This document shows, piece after piece, positions 31,824-44,285 of a stretch of 64,000 nucleotides of DNA. The stretch's first letter is position 1; each line of letters begins with the position of its first letter. Position numbers and translations under genes: made by a program. The notes beneath the pieces are model-generated. The model did no database searches. It saw nothing but the letters and a program-made list of their open reading frames with translations, and was not told the origin of the DNA. The DNA lies in assembly GCA_904063045.1 (NCBI GenBank), contig CAJFCJ010000012.1, positions 1,736,001-1,800,000 on the forward strand, written 5' to 3'. Source of the stretch: Dimorphilus gyrociliatus (lineage: Eukaryota > Animalia > Annelida).

Positions 31824-32845
31824 CTATTTAGATCTGAGAGCTTGACCTTCTCCTTGGAAAACTTTAAAATTATTATCCTCCGAGAGTTCTTTATTTGGAT
31901 CCTTATTCCTTCTCTTTTCCCTGTAAAATTGCAAATGATACGGATCGTGATTGTAGTTAGGGATTCCTCTTTGACGTCCATTGGTTGTTCGTTGAGGTGC
32001 TGCTTGGGTATTTTTTGATTTTCCATCAATTCTCTGACCTTGCCCCTGAAATGCGCAAAATGCCGAATCAACTAATTCATTTTCTGTTTCATTATCGGTG
32101 ACTTCTTGTTGATTTGCTTGACTTTTAACATTATGCTCCTGATATCCCACTGGAGATGCAAAATCAACATTCATATCGCATTCTATAATTGACACTGCAG
32201 GACCCGGCTTAGTTTCTAAAACGCAAAGTTCATAGACTTTATCATTGTAGTATATTGCTATAACATCTCCTGTTGTTAAACAAGCAAAATGCCTAAAAAA
32301 AAAAAAAGCATACGTATTAGCATTTCATGAATGAGGAGAGAATTTACGTATTATGTTGCAATTGAAGGTAAGCCTATTTTTGATTTTGCTCAATAATGAA
32401 TCACTCGCCTTAAAACGTGTTCCAAGACAGCTTTTGGGTTGGTGAGATCAAGAAAATCGAGACTTTGAGGTTGAAACTTTGCAAATGTGGCTATGGGTAA
32501 TGAAACGTTCTCTACAAGACAGATGTCTCCTTCCTCTAAAAATAAGTTTTTCATCATCCAGTGAGGAACATGCATCTGACCCTCGTCCGCAATGAATTCC
32601 AAAACACCACAATAAGTTTGTCGATTCACATTATCTTTAGTATTCGTTAATTTGAACAGCATAGGGTACTGAATGTTTAATCTCGTCAGCTGATCCAATG
32701 AGGATTGTGGTAAGATGATTTTTCCTCCTTTTTCAACATCGCCTCGATCCACGTGCATCATAGAAACGGAGTAACATTTATACCTTGCGGTAAATTGCGT
32801 TTGATGCTGCATACCATCATCGAATAAACGATTGAATGGGAACAT
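31824..32845 (-). CDS. UFD1: Ubiquitin recognition factor in ER-associated degradation 1
   Basis: [76 protein letters not shown] and SHP-like [11 protein letters not shown] / FQGEGQAL. Confidence 0.96.
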
Positions 32846-33233
32846 GACTTTAGATTTTCTTGTTTGTTAATTATAAGTAAAGTATTCTATCAGAGTGTGG
32901 AAACGGGTAATTTGTAGAGTATTTTAGACTGGTTAATTTATATTACAATATAAGTTCACAATCTTGTCCATAATGGTTGTCTACAATGATTTGTTTTATT
33001 TTCATAAAAAGTTTATGCAGAATTTAAAAAATTAAGAAATATATTATATAACGACAGAGCTATTGATAAATCAAGTTTTAAAAAAAAACCACTCTACTCC
33101 CAAAACTGGTTTAAAATCAACCGGTTTCTCACACAGCTAAACGATAACGTTTAGTCGCCGTGTGGTCGCTGAGGGCTAGTACGGAATTATATCTTTAGTT
33201 AATCTCGGTATTATATGTAGTAAGGAATAAGCG

Positions 33234-35452
33234 ATGTCTGGTTTTAATTTTGGTTCCGCTTCTACTAGTGGATTTAATTTCGGTGCATCGGCTAGTAAAC
33301 CTGCATGTAAGTACGACTTTCACAAGAAAAAGTTAACTGCCTCTACGGCATTTGATCCATATAGAAGTAAAAAACTAATCTGAAAAATTCTCTTTTATTA
33401 TCATTAAACAAAATTATTCGATTCTATATTTTTAAATGCTAATCTAAAAAAAATAATTTTCTAATATATAGCAACACAACCTGGTTTCTCCTTTCCATCA
33501 ACAACGAAGTCATCAGTATCATTCGGTCAAACGACAACACTAGGGCAAAATACTACACAGGCTGGCGCTAGTGGATTTAATTTAGGCACAGGAACAAACA
33601 CTACGACCAGTTCATCTACTTTTTCATTTGGTTAGATAATAAGTTAATGTAAATGATAAGCATAGTTATTTAATGAAATCATTAACTTAGGGAATAATAC
33701 TTTACCTTCGAAACCAACTGGTCTGACACTTCCGCAAGTATCAACATCTGCAACAGCTAATACTACTTCTCTACCAACTTTCACATCCGGTGGAACAGGA
33801 TTTAACTTTGGAGCCAAAACAACAGCTCCAGCATTAGGTGGAATAGCGACCATTTCAACTACCACAGGAAGTACGATTGATCTAATTTTTAATATGTTGA
33901 AAATAATTAATTATTATTCTATTATTTGCAAGCTGCAAGTAATACTACCGGTAGTTTTAATTTTGGTGGTCTAACGAATACTTCGAGTCCTTTCTCCAAT
34001 AATACAACAATAGGTAGTATGAGATTTAATTGTTTATATTAAATTGTTAACAAAAATCTTGATATTCAATTTACCAGCTAGCAAAGGGCTGGGAGGAGTG
34101 GATGCAGCAACAGCTCAAGCAAATGAAAAACAATCTGCAAAAGCTGCTAAAGATGCTAATATACCAAAAGAAATATTACAAACTGTCGAAGAATTCAAGT
34201 ATGACGTATTCTTATTCATAAATTGATCTTAAATCCAGAAATATGTATTTATCTTTCCTTAATAGAAAATTTTTAAATAATGAAAAAAAGTTTAGAGAAG
34301 AAATTTCTCGTCATTCAACGAAAGCTTCTGTTAACGTTGTAAAAGAAGTAAATTCGTTAAAACAACAAGCCGCTTTAGAATCATCTAAAGTTGAAAGAAA
34401 TAAAATTATGATTGAATGCCTAAAACAAGACATTAGGTCTGAATTTCGTAATGCAGAAATGGCCAAGCATACAAGAGATATTCCCGAAACATTACAATAT
34501 GAAAATATCGCACCTGGATTGTAAGAATCTTTTTTTAATATTTAAAATTTATTTTTAAGTGAATTATTTTCTATATCTAGATATTTCGAAACTTTGATAG
34601 AGAATTATGAGCATAGTATGGTTATATTTAAACAGCAGATTGACGATTTAGAACGTCATTTAATGAGTACAACTGAGCAAATAGCTCCTTTAACTGCACA
34701 AGGTAGAAACTTTTCAAATATTATATTATTAAACATGTTATTGAAAAAGAAGCTTCTTTCAGATTTATCCGATGTTATGAAGCAATTACACTCCAGTTTT
34801 ATTTGTTTAGCAGCTAATCTGCAAAGTGTGCACGATAATGTTCAAGTACATATTCTTCATGTAAACAACTGTACAATATAATTAATACTTTCTTTCTTAA
34901 TGCAGTCCCTTAAGGAGCAATTTTTGTCATATTTGAAACTCTATAAAAATGACAACAGAAATGTTTTTGATAAGAAAACGGCTCCAGCACCTAAACCAAT
35001 TGTACCTCCAACAACAATAATACCAAGCAACTCGATTTCTTCACCTGCAGCTGCTGCTGTTGCTGCTGTGTTGAGCCGTGTTCAGCCTCCGTTTAATTCC
35101 AGTAGCTTATCAGGTTAGTTTTAATTTTTCTATTTAAATTCAAAGAATATAATTAAACGTCATTTCATTTTCTCTAGCGCCGACCACTACAACAGCGAGT
35201 AATATGTTTTCAAGTTTTACTCAGCCTTCTTTCAATAGCACTGCGCCTTTAGGAAGCACAGGGTTACGACCCCAAAATGGGTCAAACCTATTTGGATCTA
35301 AACCTCCAACTTCAAATTCAGTTGCAACTGTAAGACCTTTTTCTCCAGCAGTTAATAATACTTTGGGGGGAAGTTTCTTAGGGTCAAATACAACCCAACA
35401 ACCTTTCACTCTACAAAGTCCTCCCATTGGATCGAAAAGAACGAAGAAATGA
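33234..35452 (+). CDS. NUP58: Nucleoporin p58/p45
   Basis: FG-rich N-terminus (GFNFG repeats), KGLGGVD, IPKEILQTVEEF, EEISRHSTK, NAEMAKHT and FKQQIDDLERHL coiled coil, with an FG-like C-terminal tail. Confidence 0.9.
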
Positions 35453-36070
35453 GAGATTGTAACTTATAGTCTATCAGTTTGTCTGTTATCGCTTATTGTT
35501 TTTAATAAGTTGATGCTATGCTTCACCTTTCGTTGAAATCATAGTTCTCAACTTCATAAACTTGAAAGATGTACGTTGTTTAATAAATTGCGTGTAAGCT
35601 GTGGAAAGATCTATTTTATATTTATATAGATATACAGAAAATAAACTAAGAAAGATATACAGTATATATGTATATATAAGTTCACAGTTTGCTTTTATCC
35701 TAACAACAGGAAAAGCTTAAAAGTTTTATATATGTTTATATTTATTTGTGAATTTATTATGCATAGAACAGAAATATATAATTGTGCGTAAGAACAAAAT
35801 TCAATCAGGTTTCCACTCTCCTCTGTTTACCAAAAAGTAATCCTGATTGATAATCATTTTTAATAATTAATAATTCATTTTTAAAGTAGCCGACATTAAA
35901 ACATTAATGTTTTTGTGTGTGGTTTTTTTTTGTCATACTGTACATTTACATGCATATACAGACATACTAATACAGTATATATATAATTTCTCATATAGAC
36001 ATTTTTCCAAGATGTTGCATATCCAGTTTATAAAAGAAGCACCTTTAACCAGTTTGTGAGTAATCTTTTT

Positions 36071-37883
36071 TCAAAATTCATAACGATCCTTCATTGGGAA
36101 AGTGTTAAACATTAAATATACTCTTCGTAACATTAGTATTACAATTGTGGCTCCCAGGATAATCAAAGCTGTGACAAACATCCGGCTTTCACTTCTCCTA
36201 GGACCTCTAACACCAACGTGATCAGAAGGTGCTAAAACACTATCATCATCCTGCGTTTGCTCATCATCTTCAGTCTCTCTATCCAATTTTACTCTTGGTT
36301 CGTTGCTATCTCTGTTAAGCTCTGCTTCATCATTTCTTGCAGGAGAATTACTTTCATCAGTTTTAGTACTTGTTTCAGAAGCATTATTCGATGTTCCTGA
36401 AAGTGGTGTGGATTCTGAATTATTTCTCGATATGGCCTTCGTTTTTTCACCCTGTAAATTAATAACATTTACATAATTACTCGATATAGTCTTCTATACA
36501 AATTCAATTGCGAACCTGCATATCAATTTGAGCTGCTAACTTTTTGGCTTCGGCATTTCCTGCTGCCTTTGATTCTGCAGTCTCTTCTTTCAAAATTGTA
36601 GTAACAACTCCACATTCAGAACATTTTAAATCTTTAGATCTAATTAATTCATTAATTAATTGTTTGATTAAAATATAAATTATTTAGAAAAAAGTACTTT
36701 TTTGCCAATTTTTTCCTCTGCTCCTTAGGATATTCTAATGATCCAATAGCTCCTCTTCCATGCGTTGGCATAAATCCAATAATAGCCAGTAAAGCAGTTC
36801 GAACTAAATGGAGAAAGAAAAACAGCACAAATGTTAATTTATCTAAAATGATAAGCAAAATAAAGTTAAAGTTAAAAAGATATTATATGGAGCATTAGAT
36901 GTAGATTAGATGTATATACTTTATTTATTAATATTTACATGGTATATATACTATGTATTGTTTATGTTTACTAACGACTTACTTGACCAAGATGGTTGCC
37001 AAGTTTCAGGATGATAACCGGATATGCTTAGACAGATTTTTTTATGCACTTCGAATCGACCATTTGGCTGTAGATTACAAATTATAGTAATATATTTTAT
37101 AATTGAAAAAAACAATATATATTTATAGATTTTTTTATCAATATACTTTTTTATAGAATGAATATAATTAAAAGGCTTACTGTGACAAAAAAAATACTTG
37201 GCGGTTTCATAGGATATTCTGTTGGTAAAATTATTCTTCCATGGTAAAGTCCACCCTCAAATTCTGAGTCAGCTGGACCCCGAATTGTAAAGTGCCACTC
37301 GAAAAGATTATCCTAATATATAAAGGAAGAACGTTAAAATATCGCCTATTATAATTTATAATAAAAAAAATAGCAATGTCGTAGAATTCACATTAACGGA
37401 AGAAAAGAGATGTTGCTTTATTGGTAAAATATATGGAACTCAACTAATTCAAGTCTATTTTTCTATCTAATTTTAGAATAAAACTAAGTATTTTTTTCTT
37501 CAATGTTCTAAATTAAATGCTAGCGTTTCGTTCTTTTAGATCGATCGTTTTTATGGCGAAAGACTATAGATTTTTTCAATTGTTTCAAAGAAGATAAACA
37601 AATTTTAAAATAGAACTGAAAATGACATACGTCTAACGGTTGAGCGTGATACTGATCGGTTGATTCGCTAAGCTCCTCCGCTTCTTTCATCAATCGTTTA
37701 ACAGCTGTTGTAAAGAGAATTAAATTTTTTAAAAGGAATAGGCAACATTTTTATGTCATTTATGAAGAGTATTCATGTAAACATAAATATGAATTACGTT
37801 TCTTGTCAATTTAGAAACCTATTTTAAATAATCGTTTACAAAATTTGCCTACCTGGACTCCTTAAACTGTATTGTCCATTCAT
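36071..37883 (-). CDS. UBE2J1: Ubiquitin-conjugating enzyme E2 J1 (ER tail-anchored)
   Basis: MNGQYSLRSPAVKRLMKEAEEL, DNLFEWHFTIRGP, PNGRFEVHKKICLSISGYHPETWQPSWS, RTALLAIIGFMPT, and a C-terminal TM helix. Confidence 0.96.
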
Positions 37884-39561
37884 GGTGGGTTGTTGGTTTG
37901 CAAAAAGTATTTGTTCCTACGAAAACAGTATAAAATCTACAAGTAAATCAAGAATGGGAAACGGAAACATATGACGTGTAATAAGATTTAGACTGGTCCT
38001 ATTTCACACAGAATATTCATTAGTATCCGATAGATGTCGCTAATAATAGGTTAAATACTTAAAAGTTTAAAAAGAAAAATAGCCACAAGAATACTACAGG
38101 AAATGATTAAAAATCTATAAAAATACGTAGTAGACAGATATAACAATATACAAAGAGAAAAATTATTGCAGTAGATAATAAAAAAATATGAAATATTTGC
38201 CGGAAATGCCAGAAAGCTTGGTGCATATAAATAGTAAAATATTTATATTTATTTAATATCAATTATTACAAAATTATCTAGTTTATAATTTGCAAATAGG
38301 TTCTTCGATAATATTGCATGGACCTATACAAATGTCAATATACAATGAAACATAGACAAAACCCCTATAAGAATGTATTACAAAACGTTTATTATTGATA
38401 AAGATTTGATACCCCCTTCGTATTCTTTCTGTACTTTCTTTTCTCTTGAACAAACAGGTCTAAACACCTACAGTATTGGTTTTTAACCATATGTATGTAT
38501 ATTACACAAAAGATCATTTTTTTAAACAATAGTTAGAATGTTTTAACAAATACAAAGGGCAAAGGAATCTTCAATACAAACTAGATTAAATACGATAAGA
38601 GTTTTCCATATAGAATATATGTATATATTATCTTTAATCTCAAAAATGGAAATAATATTTTTATCCTCTTTTATCAATCTTTTAAAATAAGAAATATTAT
38701 CTATTCTATTAAATCTCTTTTGCATACAGAATATGTTTATAATGAAAATAGATTTTGAATGCAAAGTGCAATTTGACATTGTCATTCCTGAGTTGCTTGC
38801 TGATCAATCACCTAATAATGGATTAGTCGATATAAATCGATAAAAGTGTTTGTACTTTGTTTTTTCATTGGTGAACCACATTTCCTTTTTTAACCTAAAA
38901 TCTCTGTTTACATCTCTGTTAAAGAAATATTTAATAAAAATAATTCGTGTTTCTCTTTTTATTGTCCTTTGTCGGGTATTGTTAATAAAAAGTATGAATT
39001 ATTAAAAAAAAGTTTCCTTTTTTTTTAAAAAAAAAACAGAAATTACAATAAAAGCCTAATTAAAAAAAAAATTAGATTTAGTAATCAAACTTTTGTATTT
39101 TTTTTTATTTTCTTGAAAGATCGATTGTACAGAGCAAAATCTCTTGTTTGATGTAATTTCTAAAAGTTTCTTCTTTGATAGACAAACTATGTTTGCCAAT
39201 ACTGCAAAATGGAGAAATTATATATGTATATATAGATTCAGGACACTGAGACAGAGAGGGTTGAGAAAGAAAAAAGAAAAAAACAGAAAGATACATACAA
39301 ACGGACAGACAGAAAGTGAGAAAAAAAGAAGACAGGAAAGGAGAACAAGAGTTTATTTAGTACTTTTATTGTTATTATTATACTTGAGTTCTTTTCTTTT
39401 CTTTTTTTTTTTGCAGTGATCTTACATTAATACTAGTAATAATACTGAATTACGAAGCAAATAATACTGAATGATTATGTGTAGGTTGGCAAAAAATCAA
39501 ATCACCTACAAGCAGAGTGCAGAGAGAAAAATACTGGATAGGAAGAACTGATGGGAAATAG

Positions 39562-39921
39562 TTAATTCCCTAAATGACTCCGCCATTTTACTGGGTTAGT
39601 TGGTGGGATTCCCATATCTTTCTTTCTGTTGTCGGTACTTCTTGAAAAGAAATAGCCGCAAGTAGATTTAACTGCTCCAGTTATAAATGGTGCCATAGAA
39701 TTCTTAAGAATTTTTCCATCTCCCGAACATTCTGGATCGACGTGCTGTTCCTTTTTAGGTTGTTGCCTGGGAGAGCAACTATACATTTCCACAGATGTTG
39801 AAATTCTCGGAGACGAGCTAATGTCTAGAATATGCCTTGAAAATCTATTGGGAATATTCAATTTTTCAAGACGTTTTTTCTCCAAAGCTTCATAAGTAAT
39901 CTTTGAATCCGTAGCGTTCAT
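39562..39921 (-). CDS. Uncharacterised ORF or exon (119 aa)
   Basis: ATG-initiated ORF preceded in frame by an AG acceptor (ccttag). No family recognised and the gene structure is unresolved. Confidence 0.4.
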   Translation of the reverse strand: MNATDSKITYEALEKKRLEKLNIPNRFSRHILDISSSPRISTSVEMYSCSPRQQPKKEQHVDPECSGDGKILKNSMAPFITGAVKSTCGYFFSRSTDNRKKDMGIPPTNPVKWRSHLGN

Positions 39922-41111
39922 ATTCTGTCGTGTTGCTAAGGATAGAATTCAAAAGAGTTTTTAATTTTTTACTTTACCAAGTAATAGAAAACAATTCTAT
40001 AAATTACAGTTTAATAGTATCTAAAAACTTAATTATCTTATCTTTACTAATTAAGTTAGTTTCAAAAAACTTACCCCAACTTACTTTTCTTACCTTAAAG
40101 CACAAATTAAATGAGCGATATTCAAATATACAACAAACCCCCCCTACAACAATATGTCAATGCGATTAACGACCATCGGTTCAATGGCATCTAGGCCTGG
40201 TTTTTAAATTCAATTATGAATTCATAAGTATAGGATTTCATTTCTTTTTAGCATATATAAACTATAGAACGAAATATGATAATCAAGAGTTGGCTTTTTT
40301 TCTCTTCAAATATATGTTGATATATATATCAACTCTATATAAAAGAATCTTTTCTATGTTTTCTTCCATTTTCCAGTAGAGTGAAAAAAAATCAATTATC
40401 AAGACAAATATAATCGTATATACTATTATTTTTCTTTAAAAAAAAAACTTATAATGTAAACCTTAATATTTTTATTAACATCCTTACATTGTTGACTTTA
40501 TTCTATAAAAGTTAAATAGAACTTCCTCTAAAAGTTTGACTTCAATGTCACGGTTAATTTCCTTAAGTTGAAGTATTTGTCACGTATCGGGGTTTTGGAT
40601 AAAAAAAGGAACTTTGGGAATTATATTATTCTATCAATCAGTAAATCTAAATTGAATTTGCTGTATAATCGATAATTGCATCAATAAATCGACAAGTTTC
40701 TATGTATATTTAACAATAATACCATAAATTTCTTTAAGTCATTTTATGATATAAAAACAACATGTTGATACGAGAGGAATATTCTCTTTTTATTGTTTTA
40801 CAATACTTAATTATAAACATCGTAGGCAGATTCTCTATTGTTTTATTAATTGATCAATCTTACTCGTCTTATTAGCAGAGTTTAGAAATTAGAATAGTAA
40901 CGATAGATGGCATTGGGTATTGGTTTAATATTTAACTAGAATTTTGGCGCTATAAACCCTTCTTTAAACTATCTATTGAGTTTTGGCCACCTAGTTGATT
41001 ATTTTATAACATAATCTCACAGTCAAAGTTTCGTGAATATTATTGATGCTTTCTATTCAGTGAAAATATCTTTTATTGATTATATCAATTAAAGTAAACG
41101 TTTAACATGAA

Positions 41112-42200
41112 TTAAATAGGCTCTGATCGGTGAACGTCTAATCGACAATTACTCATTGCATTTTTAAAACAAGTAATCTTTTCTTCTTTTTCATTCAATG
41201 TCCTTTCTTCATATAGCAGTCTTTTACGATCACTCTCTAATTTTCTTCTTTTCCTCTGCAAATCCTCAACTTGGTCTTGCAGAATACTGTCAACAAGCTC
41301 ATTGATAGTACTGGTAGTAACTGATACTTTGGCACCGTCTGTTGCATACTCTGACTGTTTAACATAGTATTTAGGTAGATTAATTTTCGAATGAAAACTT
41401 CTTTTAGGTGATTGTTTTTTTGGCAGCAGACGAATTTCTCCTATAATCTCACCTTCATTAATGGTAATTTTGCGCCATTTAGAATTTACCATGAGAATCC
41501 CTATTTTACCATTGCTTATTTTAACTACTGAACTCAGAGCGTCTAAGCCTGGAGAACCTTGAATTTCATCCCTCGCGTCAAAAATAACCTCTTTCGTTCC
41601 AAGCGGTACGGGTGGACACGAAAAGAAGAAAATGCATCTTTCTTCTGGACCTAGACTGATAGATTTCTCTGTTAAAACATCAGTTAGCTTTGGAACGCTC
41701 TTTTTATTCATTAACGGAAGAACGAAACATTTACGATCCAAGAATAACCTTACAACTGATTGTCCAAAGTCGAATTGAGCCCCTAACTCGTCAAGAATAT
41801 CCCATCCAAGTATAGCATCATCCTTGTCCATATCTTCAACAATAAACGTACAGTCTTTCTCTCCATTACCAAATTTCAATTTATAGGTAACTTTAGTAAT
41901 TTTATTTTCAACTTCATCATTGCCTTTCGACAGTAAATGACAAGTTGAATTTAATGGAGGTATTAAACTAACTAATTTGGAGCTAATTTTTGATGTTTTA
42001 TGGCCTGTTAGTAATATAACTTGAACAGGATAATTTTCAATTCTCATCGATACACAATCAAAAACTTCGTTGGATGTTTTCTTTGATACAGTACCCAACT
42101 GATCAGGTATATTAAAATTAATAATACCACAGCCATTTTCTAATGTTGATAAATCATCCTCAAGATCCCCCAAGCATTCTATATGCACTCCTTTATCCAT
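41112..42200 (-). CDS. Retrotransposon-derived (Ty3/Gypsy-like) aspartic protease-fold protein lacking the catalytic Asp, with a C-terminal coiled coil
   Basis: Intact 362-aa ORF with VQVILLTGHKTSKIS (LDTG-like site reads LLTG) and DAILGWDILDELGAQFDF (retropepsin ILG-D motif). These are followed by a pol-linker/dUTPase-like beta region (SSVVKISNGKIGILMVN...ITINEGEIIGEI). No gag, RT, integrase or LTRs nearby. Confidence 0.7.
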   Translation of the reverse strand: MDKGVHIECLGDLEDDLSTLENGCGIINFNIPDQLGTVSKKTSNEVFDCVSMRIENYPVQVILLTGHKTSKISSKLVSLIPPLNSTCHLLSKGNDEVENKITKVTYKLKFGNGEKDCTFIVEDMDKDDAILGWDILDELGAQFDFGQSVVRLFLDRKCFVLPLMNKKSVPKLTDVLTEKSISLGPEERCIFFFSCPPVPLGTKEVIFDARDEIQGSPGLDALSSVVKISNGKIGILMVNSKWRKITINEGEIIGEIRLLPKKQSPKRSFHSKINLPKYYVKQSEYATDGAKVSVTTSTINELVDSILQDQVEDLQRKRRKLESDRKRLLYEERTLNEKEEKITCFKNAMSNCRLDVHRSEPI

Positions 42201-42646
42201 AATAAAGATTTCTTGGAATGTTACTATTTGTCGTAAATCAAATTCTGATAAAAGAAATATTATTAGTATTTCAAGAATTTACACTACATGTCCTATTTTT
42301 TTAAGTTGTCTTAAAACAACATTCTCTCATGCAAAATCTCTTAAACTTTTCGCCTACAAACATACTAGAAATTCTTTATCTTAAAATAAGGGTTTTTTTT
42401 CTAATAAATAACATTTTGTTCGATATACTATCAATAACAACAAAATATCTCATGGTTATATTCGAGATAAGATTACACATGTTGTTCTTACAAGAACAAA
42501 CATATTAATAATTAGTTCGTGTTGTTTAAGTTGTTGTTGACAATAAATAAAGAATTTGCTTACTTTTGCAAGCTAATAAAACTCGATATGTAAGTTTGAG
42601 TAACTAAACAATAGACACTCTATTCTCGTGCAATGTGTTTTTTCAA

Positions 42647-42656
42647 GGCGGGAAAA
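42647..42656 (+). promoter_or_regulatory. E2F-type site GGCGGGAAAA in the bidirectional promoter upstream of RFC3
   Basis: Matches the TTTCCCGC consensus on the minus strand, about 130 bp upstream of the RFC3 ATG. Replication genes are typical E2F targets. Confidence 0.5.
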
Positions 42657-42779
42657 ATGCCGGAAGAGTACGCAATACCCGTTTATTTTCAAACTTTGAA
42701 TATATTTTCCCTAATTTCTAGGCGGGCGAACAGTCGAATCGGTTAAACGACTAGCCACGATAGTAGAACAACAATCAAA

Positions 42780-44155
42780 ATGTCACTATGGGTAGATAAA
42801 TATAGACCTCGAAGCTTAGGAAAATTAGATTACCATGAGGAACAAGCAAATATGCTGAAGAAGCTGGTAAGAATGAGCGATAATGCAATTTAATACCTTA
42901 CTTAAATTCATCACAATTAACAAGGTGCAATCAGGAGACTTTCCCCATATGCTGGTTTATGGGCCCAATGGAGCAGGCAAGAGGACAAGAATTATGGCGG
43001 TATTACGAGAGCTCTATGGACATGGTGTCGAAAAATTGCGTCACGAGCACCAAACTTTTACTACACCATCAAAGAAAAAATTGGAAATTTCCACAATCGC
43101 AAGCAATTATCACATCGAAGTAAATCCCAGTGATGCGGGAATATACGATAGAGTTGTTATCCAAGATCTTATTAAAACCGTTGCCCAAACTAACCAACTG
43201 GAATCCTCATCTCAACGGGAGTTTAAAAGTAAAGCTTAATTTAAACGTATATTTACACTTCGTTTTTAACGTTACTATAAATCACTCAGTTGTTCTAATA
43301 ATGGAGGCTGATCGCTTAACCAAGGATGCTCAGCATGCTTTAAGAAGAACTATGGAAAAGTATATGTCCACATGTAGAATAATTTTATGTGCAAATACGA
43401 CAAGTAAAGTAATTGGAGCAATACGCAGTCGTTGTTTAGCGGTTAGGGTTTCATCCCCCACAATTGAGCAGGTTAGGCCTAACTACTTAATCTCTCAATT
43501 TCAAGGAGTTGCAAATAACCTTAATAATAAATACACAGATCATGATTATTCTCACGTTCGTTTGCAAGAAGGAAGGCTTAAGTCTACCAAATGAATTAGC
43601 AAAGAGAATAGCAGAGTATAGTCAAGGAAATTTAAGAAAAGCTTTACTAGCATGTGAGGCTTGTAGAGTTCAACAGTTCGTTTTTTTTTAACACTAAATA
43701 AATAGTATTGATGACATGTTACGCGCTTGAAACAAAAATAGATATCCCTTTTCCGACGATCAAGAAATACCAAAAGCTGACTGGGAAGTATATTTAAAGG
43801 AAACAAGTAGTTTGATTGTTGAAGAACAGAGTCCGAACAGGTTTTTACGCATGTTCATTGTACTATCTCCAATTTAATAATACATTCTATTATTAGACTT
43901 CTGCAAATTCGAGAAAGATTATACGAACTGTTGGTGCATTGTATTCCCCCAGAAATGATTATGAAAAAATTATTACAAGAATTAATGATGAACTGTGATG
44001 GAACGTTAAAAACGGGGGTTATACAAGCTGCTGCAAGATTTGAACATCGTATGCAAAAGGGACAGAAACCAATTTACCACTTGGAAGCTTTTGTCGCCTA
44101 TTTTATGGCAATGTATAAGAAATTTTTAGAAGATGGTATGACGGCCGATTGGTAA
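42780..44155 (+). CDS. RFC3: Replication factor C subunit 3
   Basis: [78 protein letters not shown] and HLEAFVA. Confidence 0.97.
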
Positions 44156-44285
44156 ATAAAATTAACGATGATTGTAGCGTAAATTGCATTTTAGCGCCAT
44201 ATGGCGATTTGTACTGTGTTGGTACATATATAAATAATACAAGAACGCTGTACATTTTTTTAAAACGCTTAATACTGTACATAGG

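Follow-up and report, generated by a model that had tools for sequence, protein, structure and literature searches.

An intronless gene lying head-to-head with RFC3 in the annelid Dimorphilus gyrociliatus is very probably a domesticated retrotransposon segment, and the comparisons below demonstrate that it originated in the pol of a Ty3/Gypsy (Metaviridae) retrotransposon, from the part that encodes protease and dUTPase (pro-dut). It was found in the window, the whole stretch of 64,000 nucleotides that was analyzed, and is referred to here as the PR-DU gene. The initial annotation of this DNA had proposed an exapted Gypsy-type protease gene; domestication is well supported, because the gene is single-copy, keeps its synteny and bears the marks of purifying selection. 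On sequence evidence, it appears to be a lineage-restricted host gene of D. gyrociliatus and at least two related species. We are likewise highly confident that the encoded protein would be non-catalytic, while an oligomeric adaptor as its mode of action has roughly even chances. The best overall explanation, which we consider fairly probable, is a co-opted pro-dut gene with an added Leu-heptad helix that acts as a non-enzymatic adaptor.

The uninterrupted 362-aa open reading frame (ORF) described initially was confirmed by reading the sequence: it runs from an ATG to a TAA stop, contains no introns, and sits inside a 388-codon open frame in the six-frame reading. At a base composition of about 30% GC, a stop is expected roughly every 12 codons, so the 388-codon frame is not a product of chance; from base composition, we estimate the chance probability of an open frame as long as the 362-aa ORF at roughly 1e-14. 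The gene and its parts, in window coordinates, are as follows.

41112..42200, minus strand: PR-DU gene ORF, 362 aa plus TAA (ORF reading; the orthologues P0002 and P0003 are collinear over the full length).
42069..42200, minus strand: N-terminal acidic region, aa 1-44, poorly conserved except for a DLE motif (orthologue alignment; pN 0.48; low pLDDT).
41691..42068, minus strand: retropepsin-fold domain, aa 45-170, predicted to be catalytically dead (AF2 pLDDT 82; VIA Z; Foldseek; Pfam sub-threshold).
42009..42011, minus strand: CTA codon for Leu64 at the catalytic Asp position (LLTGH where relatives have xD[TS]GA).
41406..41690, minus strand: dUTPase-like beta-barrel, aa 171-265, the best conserved domain (VIA, Foldseek and HMM alignment; pN 0.19).
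41316..41405, minus strand: linker, aa 266-295, evolving near-neutrally (pN 0.48 vs pS 0.53; low pLDDT).
41148..41315, minus strand: long charged C-terminal helix, aa 296-351 (AF2 pLDDT 80-92; invariant columns in three orthologues).
41072..41077, minus strand: AATAAA polyadenylation-type signal about 35 nt past the stop (read from sequence).

An AF2 model of aa 40-265, built from a 12-row alignment (pLDDT 81.8), contains two domains: a retropepsin at aa 45-170 and a dUTPase-type barrel at aa 169-265. Structure searches with this model supported the retropepsin architecture claimed at the outset. Foldseek against the PDB returned Ddi1 RVP domains (E 3e-7 to 1e-6; TM 0.74-0.77 by target) followed by retroviral proteases, and the VIA search identified model residues 6-131 as retropepsins, with Z scores of 15.0 to 7d66, 10.2 to EIAV PR and 10.1 to XMRV PR. 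No Pfam model scored above its gathering threshold; gag-asp_proteas reached 16.3 bits against a cut-off of 28.2 (E 0.015). The diagnostic elements first noted, an LDTG-like strand, DAILGWDIL and FDF, were all found, the first as LLTGH.

The codon that should encode the catalytic Asp is indeed CTA (42011-42009), as had been reported, and specifies Leu64 in the strand V-I-L-L-T-G-H. In all of the retroelement and paralogue proteases compared, the aligned position holds the Asp of D[TS]G. The Asp is absent from all three orthologues, which extends the initial claim of its loss: the Asp-less strand reads L-L-T-G-H-K in two species and L-L-N-G-H-K in the third, so the loss predates the divergence of the three species. 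Replacement of the catalytic Asp inactivates both ASPRV1 and HIV-1 protease (PMC11402058), and with Leu at this position the protein is predicted to be unable to act as an aspartic protease.

The rest of the domain is unevenly conserved. ILGWDIL, which represents the ILGxD[FIL]L helix motif after the last barrel strands, is invariant across the three orthologues, and the stretch A-Q-F-D-F-G-Q-S-V-V-R after the ILG helix is among the most invariant of all; it corresponds to the dimer sheet of Ddi1-type retropepsins. Conservation within the domain is lowest in the flap hairpin, which carries an indel and has a pLDDT of about 50, and such a degenerate flap argues against canonical peptide binding in the cleft.

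In the second domain, the dUTPase-like fold that was to be looked for on a structural model was found. The VIA search assigned model residues 130-226 to the dUTPase fold, with Z scores of 9.4 to EBV dUTPase, 8.4 to the human enzyme and 8.1 to that of M-PMV; many bacterial, phage and viral dUTPases and dCTP deaminases also matched, as did catalytically dead herpesvirus relatives (HCMV pp71, 8.6; MHV68 ORF10, 8.5). In total, more than 15 dUTPase, dCTP-deaminase and DURP entries matched with Z 7-9.4 over about 90 of the 96 residues. Foldseek against the PDB found FIV dUTPase (E 1.5e-4, 28% identity), and the same protein was the top PDB match of an orthologue-only profile, in an alignment that spans the full domain at an E value (0.087) not significant alone. 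The Pfam search of the protein returned no dUTPase match. A different identity for this domain, eL14/KOW-type, had arisen from a mixed profile (E 6e-4) and was rejected: the match covers 68 residues only, and eL14 is absent from the top 50 of the structure search, which dUTPases fill.

Catalytic motif 3 of dUTPases is G-x-I-D-x-x-Y-R-G, and motif 5 forms the C-terminal arm. In the HMM alignment to FIV dUTPase, a Lys occupies the position of the motif-3 catalytic Asp and the domain ends before motif 5; as judged from these positions, the protein should be unable to act as a dUTPase. The second domain would thus be a dead enzyme as well, and the protein a putative double pseudoenzyme. In an alignment of six sequences, the retroelement relatives likewise have no canonical motif 3, so the barrel was probably non-catalytic already in the donor lineage. 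The interdomain segment and the last barrel strands (N-S-K-W-R, I-N-E-G and I-I-G) are also among the most invariant stretches in the three orthologues.

The origin of the two-domain unit emerged when the three orthologues were combined into a profile over aa 40-262 and 1.84 billion representatives were searched with it. This search yielded seven matches, and no annotated or wider family was detectable by the profile among those representatives. P0008 is a pol fragment in which a protease and a spacer domain are joined to RVT_1 and RNase H; P0007 and P0009 carry a protease with D-S-G or D-T-G intact, followed by the same spacer domain. The element around P0007 contains, in order, Ty3_capsid/zf-CCHC, the protease and spacer, RVT_1, RNase H and integrase, and P0009 comes after a capsid-like ORF. 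The six aligned sequences remain collinear across the two domains, and Leu64 is matched by the Asp of the retroelements. The Atlas model of the protein and the AF2 model match arthropod, mollusc and rotifer pol fragments over the second or both domains; for aa 171-262, the structures matched in the Atlas belong to pol fragments. The beta-rich segment that had been noted to follow the protease as in Ty3/Gypsy pol is accordingly the PR-RT spacer module of some Ty3/Gypsy elements, with a dUTPase fold. A dUTPase domain between protease and RT has been described in the rotifer elements Juno, Vesta and TelKA and in basidiomycete Gypsy elements (PMC5408684). Word searches with the family profile and with P0008 retrieved almost nothing further. 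One of the seven profile matches, P0004, was rejected as spurious: in this PDZ-bearing protein of 4126 aa, it is the repeats that resemble a short part of the query.

We then assessed copy number in the D. gyrociliatus genome (77.9 Mb, 349 contigs). Searched with the protein in all six frames, the entire genome yielded the gene and, besides it, a single remote paralogue (aa 45-165, 27% identity), which makes the gene single-copy in 78 Mb. The absence of flanking gag, RT, integrase and LTR sequences noted earlier holds: the neighbors are RFC3 and CIMIP3, the latter downstream of the PR-DU gene, no direct repeats of at least 25 nt were found within 5 kb on either side, and an Rfam search around the gene gave no matches. 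A DU-like ORF at C12:2065466-2066294 was considered as a paralogue (hhalign gave E 1e-4 with the mixed and E 0.008 with the orthologue profile), and this relationship was set aside as weak.

The genome does contain Gypsy elements. A profile that includes the retroelement relatives found at least 150 Gypsy protease copies, mostly on small repeat-rich contigs, with RT copies equally abundant. These resident copies match only the protease part (profile positions 17-122), and two resident Gypsy elements translated as they stand run from protease through a short linker into RT, with no second domain. Since the proteases of the resident families lack the DU spacer domain, the gene does not appear to derive from any currently resident element family.

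The remote paralogue raises an alternative mode of action. It is identical to DgyrCDS9534 (CAD5120990.1, contig C13) and is the closest intragenomic match to the PR-DU gene (E 1.5e-6): like it, DgyrCDS9534 is a host-annotated, RT-less retropepsin gene with an orthologue in a related species (P0005). It differs in keeping M-D-T-G-A and in having a long N-terminal region, an acidic repeat tail and no dUTPase-like domain. Retropepsins are obligate dimers to which each subunit contributes one Asp (PMC11402058), so a mixed dimer with an Asp-less subunit would be inactive. By heterodimerizing with an active retropepsin, which might be DgyrCDS9534 or the protease of a retroelement, a dead protease fold could act as a trans-dominant inhibitor, that is, as a host-encoded protease brake or a retroelement restriction factor. 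The protease-like domain does group with the DTG-bearing paralogue clade P0005/P0006 in the protease tree (support 89/92), where DgyrCDS9534 is sister to the PR-DU gene, but this tree is small (12 rows, about 120 columns). The genome is poor in transposable elements (4.87%; PMC7854359), and the profile search found no element of the PR-DU type there. On the other side, the resident Gypsy proteases share only about 17% identity with the protein, and the pattern of change is that of purifying selection and not of an arms race. We regard this inhibitor reading as unlikely, and silencing of DgyrCDS9534 or of a Gypsy protease by the Asp-less partner as correspondingly doubtful. If true, the protein would be a pol-derived counterpart of the gag-derived restriction factors, in a compact genome poor in transposable elements.

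To assess conservation, we turned to orthologues recovered from Logan assemblies by word search: P0002 (355 aa, 53% identity) and P0003 (356 aa, 47% identity), both of which align collinearly with the query along their whole length, starting at Met1. Two contigs, of 22 kb and 55 kb, carry P0002 in a head-to-head position with RFC3 (loci L003 and L004), and the 13-kb locus L003 is colinear as a whole with window positions 32198-44254. The synteny check called for in related species therefore shows the head-to-head arrangement with RFC3 kept in a second species. Between the two species for which DNA is available, protein identity is 94-99% for RFC3 exons, 77% for CIMIP3 and 53% for the PR-DU gene, which thus evolves fast relative to its neighbors.

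Selection was examined by Nei-Gojobori counts between the window and L003. For the whole ORF, pN was 0.30 and pS 0.74. The second, dUTPase-like domain was the most constrained (pN 0.19, pS 0.76), and the protease-like domain (0.27, 0.69) and the helix (0.29, 0.83) also had pN well below pS; the corresponding values were 0.48 and 0.86 for the N-terminus and 0.48 and 0.53 for the linker at aa 262-300. Synonymous sites are saturated in the PR-DU gene and nearly so in RFC3 (pS 0.47-0.72), so omega, which had been proposed as a check, is only bounded, at about 0.1-0.4 overall. As far as these counts can be read, the folded domains are under purifying selection (pN 0.30 against pS 0.74 for the whole ORF), and their contrast with the linker would be the pattern expected of a functional protein.

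These data bear directly on the possibility that the ORF is a retroelement fragment or a recent insertion, open by chance or only transiently and with no host function. The gene is intronless, poor in Pfam matches, of retroelement ancestry and relatively fast in its divergence, as such a fragment would be. Against this, frames of 355-362 aa are intact in three species at saturated synonymous divergence, a second species has the gene at the same place beside RFC3, pN falls far short of pS, and the gene is single-copy with no element remains around it. We consider a functionless fragment extremely improbable.

The conserved neighborhood also offers clues to regulation. RFC3 was examined exon by exon, and the intergenic region, which measures 579 nt from the PR-DU gene ATG to the RFC3 ATG, was aligned between two species. 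The features on this side of the gene are as follows.

42780..44155, plus strand: RFC3, multi-exon, the divergent head-to-head neighbor (Pfam RFC_C and DNA_pol3_delta2 on its exons; also present in L003 and L004).
42647..42665, no strand assigned: conserved block of 19 nt with the E2F-type site TTTCCCGC (two-species intergenic alignment).
42694..42731, no strand assigned: second conserved promoter-proximal block, with a GC-rich GCCCGCC core (two-species intergenic alignment).
42224..42563, minus strand: candidate 5'-UTR intron from the initial annotation, compatible with the sequence (GT and AG dinucleotides; sequence only).

Intergenic conservation is confined to the two blocks near RFC3, and the rest is unalignable between the two species. 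The E2F site first proposed for the RFC3 promoter region is present as the E2F-type sequence TTTCCCGC at 42655-42648 on the minus strand, within a block that is also kept in the related species. This block precedes the RFC3 ATG by 115-133 nt and is separated from the PR-DU gene ATG by about 450 nt. E2F-type motifs are not enriched in the window (6 found, 3.4 expected); support for this candidate site comes from conservation and position, not from occurrence.

The proposed intron has its GT at 42563-42562 and its AG at 42225-42224, each present as a dinucleotide only; a stronger acceptor, with a pyrimidine tract and CAG, ends at 42245 and is better than that at 42224. The related species likewise shows a GTAAG about 80 nt past this conserved block, as well as a strong acceptor a short distance ahead of the start codon of the gene. 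A short leader exon and intron are possible, because GTAAG and a strong acceptor occur in both species. In a third run of the related species, the orthologue is bracketed by a Logan contig of 1437 nt that is colinear with the genome. Its first base lies 191 nt ahead of the ATG, and at the other end an AATAAA is followed about 30 nt later by a terminal A-run. If that run were RNA, the contig would argue for an unspliced transcript that starts inside the candidate intron. Transcription of the PR-DU gene from the RFC3 divergent promoter region, possibly linked to E2F and S phase, is plausible from this arrangement.

A stronger version of this idea would tie the protein to replication or repair alongside RFC3: the two genes would share an E2F promoter and S-phase expression, and the folds would act non-catalytically at forks. 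Conservation of the divergent arrangement and of the block with TTTCCCGC fits such a role, as does the best structural match of the first domain, the Ddi1 RVP domain. The block, however, is several times closer to the RFC3 ATG than to that of the PR-DU gene, the motif shows no enrichment in the window, and the similarity to the Ddi1 fold is generic to retropepsins. On balance, we judge a role tied to RFC3 improbable.

We return to the adaptor reading, in which the C-terminus has a part. With a three-orthologue alignment, AF2 gave a pLDDT of 36, and only the helix at 296-351 was confident. In all three orthologues, this helix carries Leu or Ile every seven residues (L314, L321, L328, 335 and 342), and its other (second) core position is occupied by charged residues. 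It may be an unusual coiled coil or, because the second core position is charged, a single alpha-helix. The helix has no counterpart in the retroelement relatives; since these run on into RT at that point, the tail appears to be a host-side addition.

According to the mechanism that we propose, the pro-dut segment of a Ty3/Gypsy pol would have been co-opted and extended by this non-retroelement Leu-heptad helix, and its product would act as a non-enzymatic, self-associating adaptor. The helix would mediate oligomerization, probably with the help of the C-terminal strands that are conserved in the retropepsin fold. Partners would bind to the surface of the dUTPase-like barrel, which is strongly conserved, much as they do in catalytically dead herpesvirus proteins related to dUTPase.

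Comparison with known systems places the gene among several partial precedents. Herpesvirus dUTPase-related proteins reuse a dead dUTPase fold as a protein-binding module, and HCMV pp71/UL82 and MHV68 ORF10, which have the dUTPase fold without catalytic motifs, match aa 169-263 with Z 8.5-8.6. They are viral, of independent origin and built from duplicated domains, so the resemblance is one of use and not of descent. DDI proteins are ancient and eukaryote-wide; no structure matched aa 45-170 better than the DDI1/DDI2 RVP domain (Z 15.0, rmsd 2.2 over 115 residues; Foldseek E 3e-7), whereas the UBL-HDD-RVP(-UBA) architecture and the intact D[ST]GA of these proteins are both absent from the PR-DU gene. 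To our knowledge, host genes derived from retroelement proteases (ASPRV1, PEG10 and RTL1) keep the active site. ASPRV1/SASPase, like the PR-DU gene, is a single-copy host gene from a Metaviridae protease, and among PDB sequences it gives the best match (E 1e-13) to the family profile in which the retroelement relatives are included. It differs in keeping D-S-G-A, in being an active, self-processing protease (PMC11402058) and in having a Gag-like remnant and no dUTPase-like domain, while the PR-DU gene has Leu at the Asp position, a dUTPase-like barrel and the Leu-heptad helix. In a survey of mammalian domesticated metaviral genes, none had kept a dUTPase domain (PMC11011659). The PR-dUTPase-RT Ty3/Gypsy elements themselves (Juno/Vesta/TelKA, the basidiomycete elements and the P0007 element) share with it the same two domains in the same order, and the alignment is collinear through both; they are mobile and carry gag, RT, RNase H, integrase and an intact D[TS]G, whereas the PR-DU gene has none of these and is a syntenic single copy.

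Taken together, the evidence supports a new domestication well: a spiralian gene that has kept the protease-dUTPase unit as what appears to be a conserved double pseudoenzyme and has gained a new helix. It indicates that segments of pol beyond integrase and protease can be co-opted, and kept for their folds and not for their chemistry. D. gyrociliatus is culturable, and published RNA-seq, CAGE and ATAC data exist for it, so both the function and the regulation of the gene are directly testable.

The Asp-less retropepsin-like gene at window 41112-42200 (minus strand) was compared with other retropepsin and dUTPase-like sequences. Another retropepsin host gene, DgyrCDS9534 (828 aa; protein P0006; locus L002, G000:C13:1193725-1197099), was observed in the D. 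gyrociliatus genome without an accompanying RT. Its M-D-T-G-A motif is intact, its N-terminal region is long and its tail is an acidic Glu-rich repeat; a 607-aa protein from a related species, P0005, is its orthologue. In the small protease tree, the protease domains of DgyrCDS9534 and of the gene studied were recovered as sisters, with support of 89/92.

A further ORF and a sequencing-read contig were recorded as follows:
L016:1967-2794 (minus strand) = G000:C12:2065466-2066293: orphan ORF of 275 aa, approximately 265 kb past the window end
L005, 1437-nt Logan contig from SRR23372231: brackets the orthologue of the gene studied

The middle of the orphan ORF aligned with the dUTPase-like domain in hhalign, with an E-value of 1e-4 against the mixed profile, in which retroelement relatives are included, and 0.008 against the profile of the orthologues. 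After this aligned part come a Pro-rich linker and then a charged helix, a layout resembling that of the gene studied over its C-terminal two thirds. A Pfam search of the ORF returned no match. The Logan contig is colinear with genomic DNA and its ends are transcript-like, with a 5' flank of 191 nt and a 3' A-run approximately 30 nt past an AATAAA.

P0004, a giant repeat protein of 4126 aa with an N-terminal PDZ domain retrieved in the search of representatives, was rejected as a relative: its misleading E-value of 1.8e-25 was built up through 15 repeats, because these share with the protease-like domain the short stretch K-F-G...V-x-D-M-D-K-D.

A non-coding block at window 40078-40249 is 89.5% identical to the related species, a higher value than for the coding exons around it. 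Read on the minus strand, the block terminates in AAG/GTAAGA, and an Rfam search of it found no family. The downstream CIMIP3 gene probably has its promoter and a non-coding first exon here. Another block, at window 38676-38891, shows 88.7% identity with the related species and has no evident ORF.

Resident Gypsy elements are abundant (L008-L015, on small contigs C64-C185), and their D-S-G protease leads into RT with no dUTPase-like spacer between the two. These elements probably represent the published 'Dingle' family, and their clustering on small contigs agrees with the TE islands described for D. gyrociliatus (PMC7854359).
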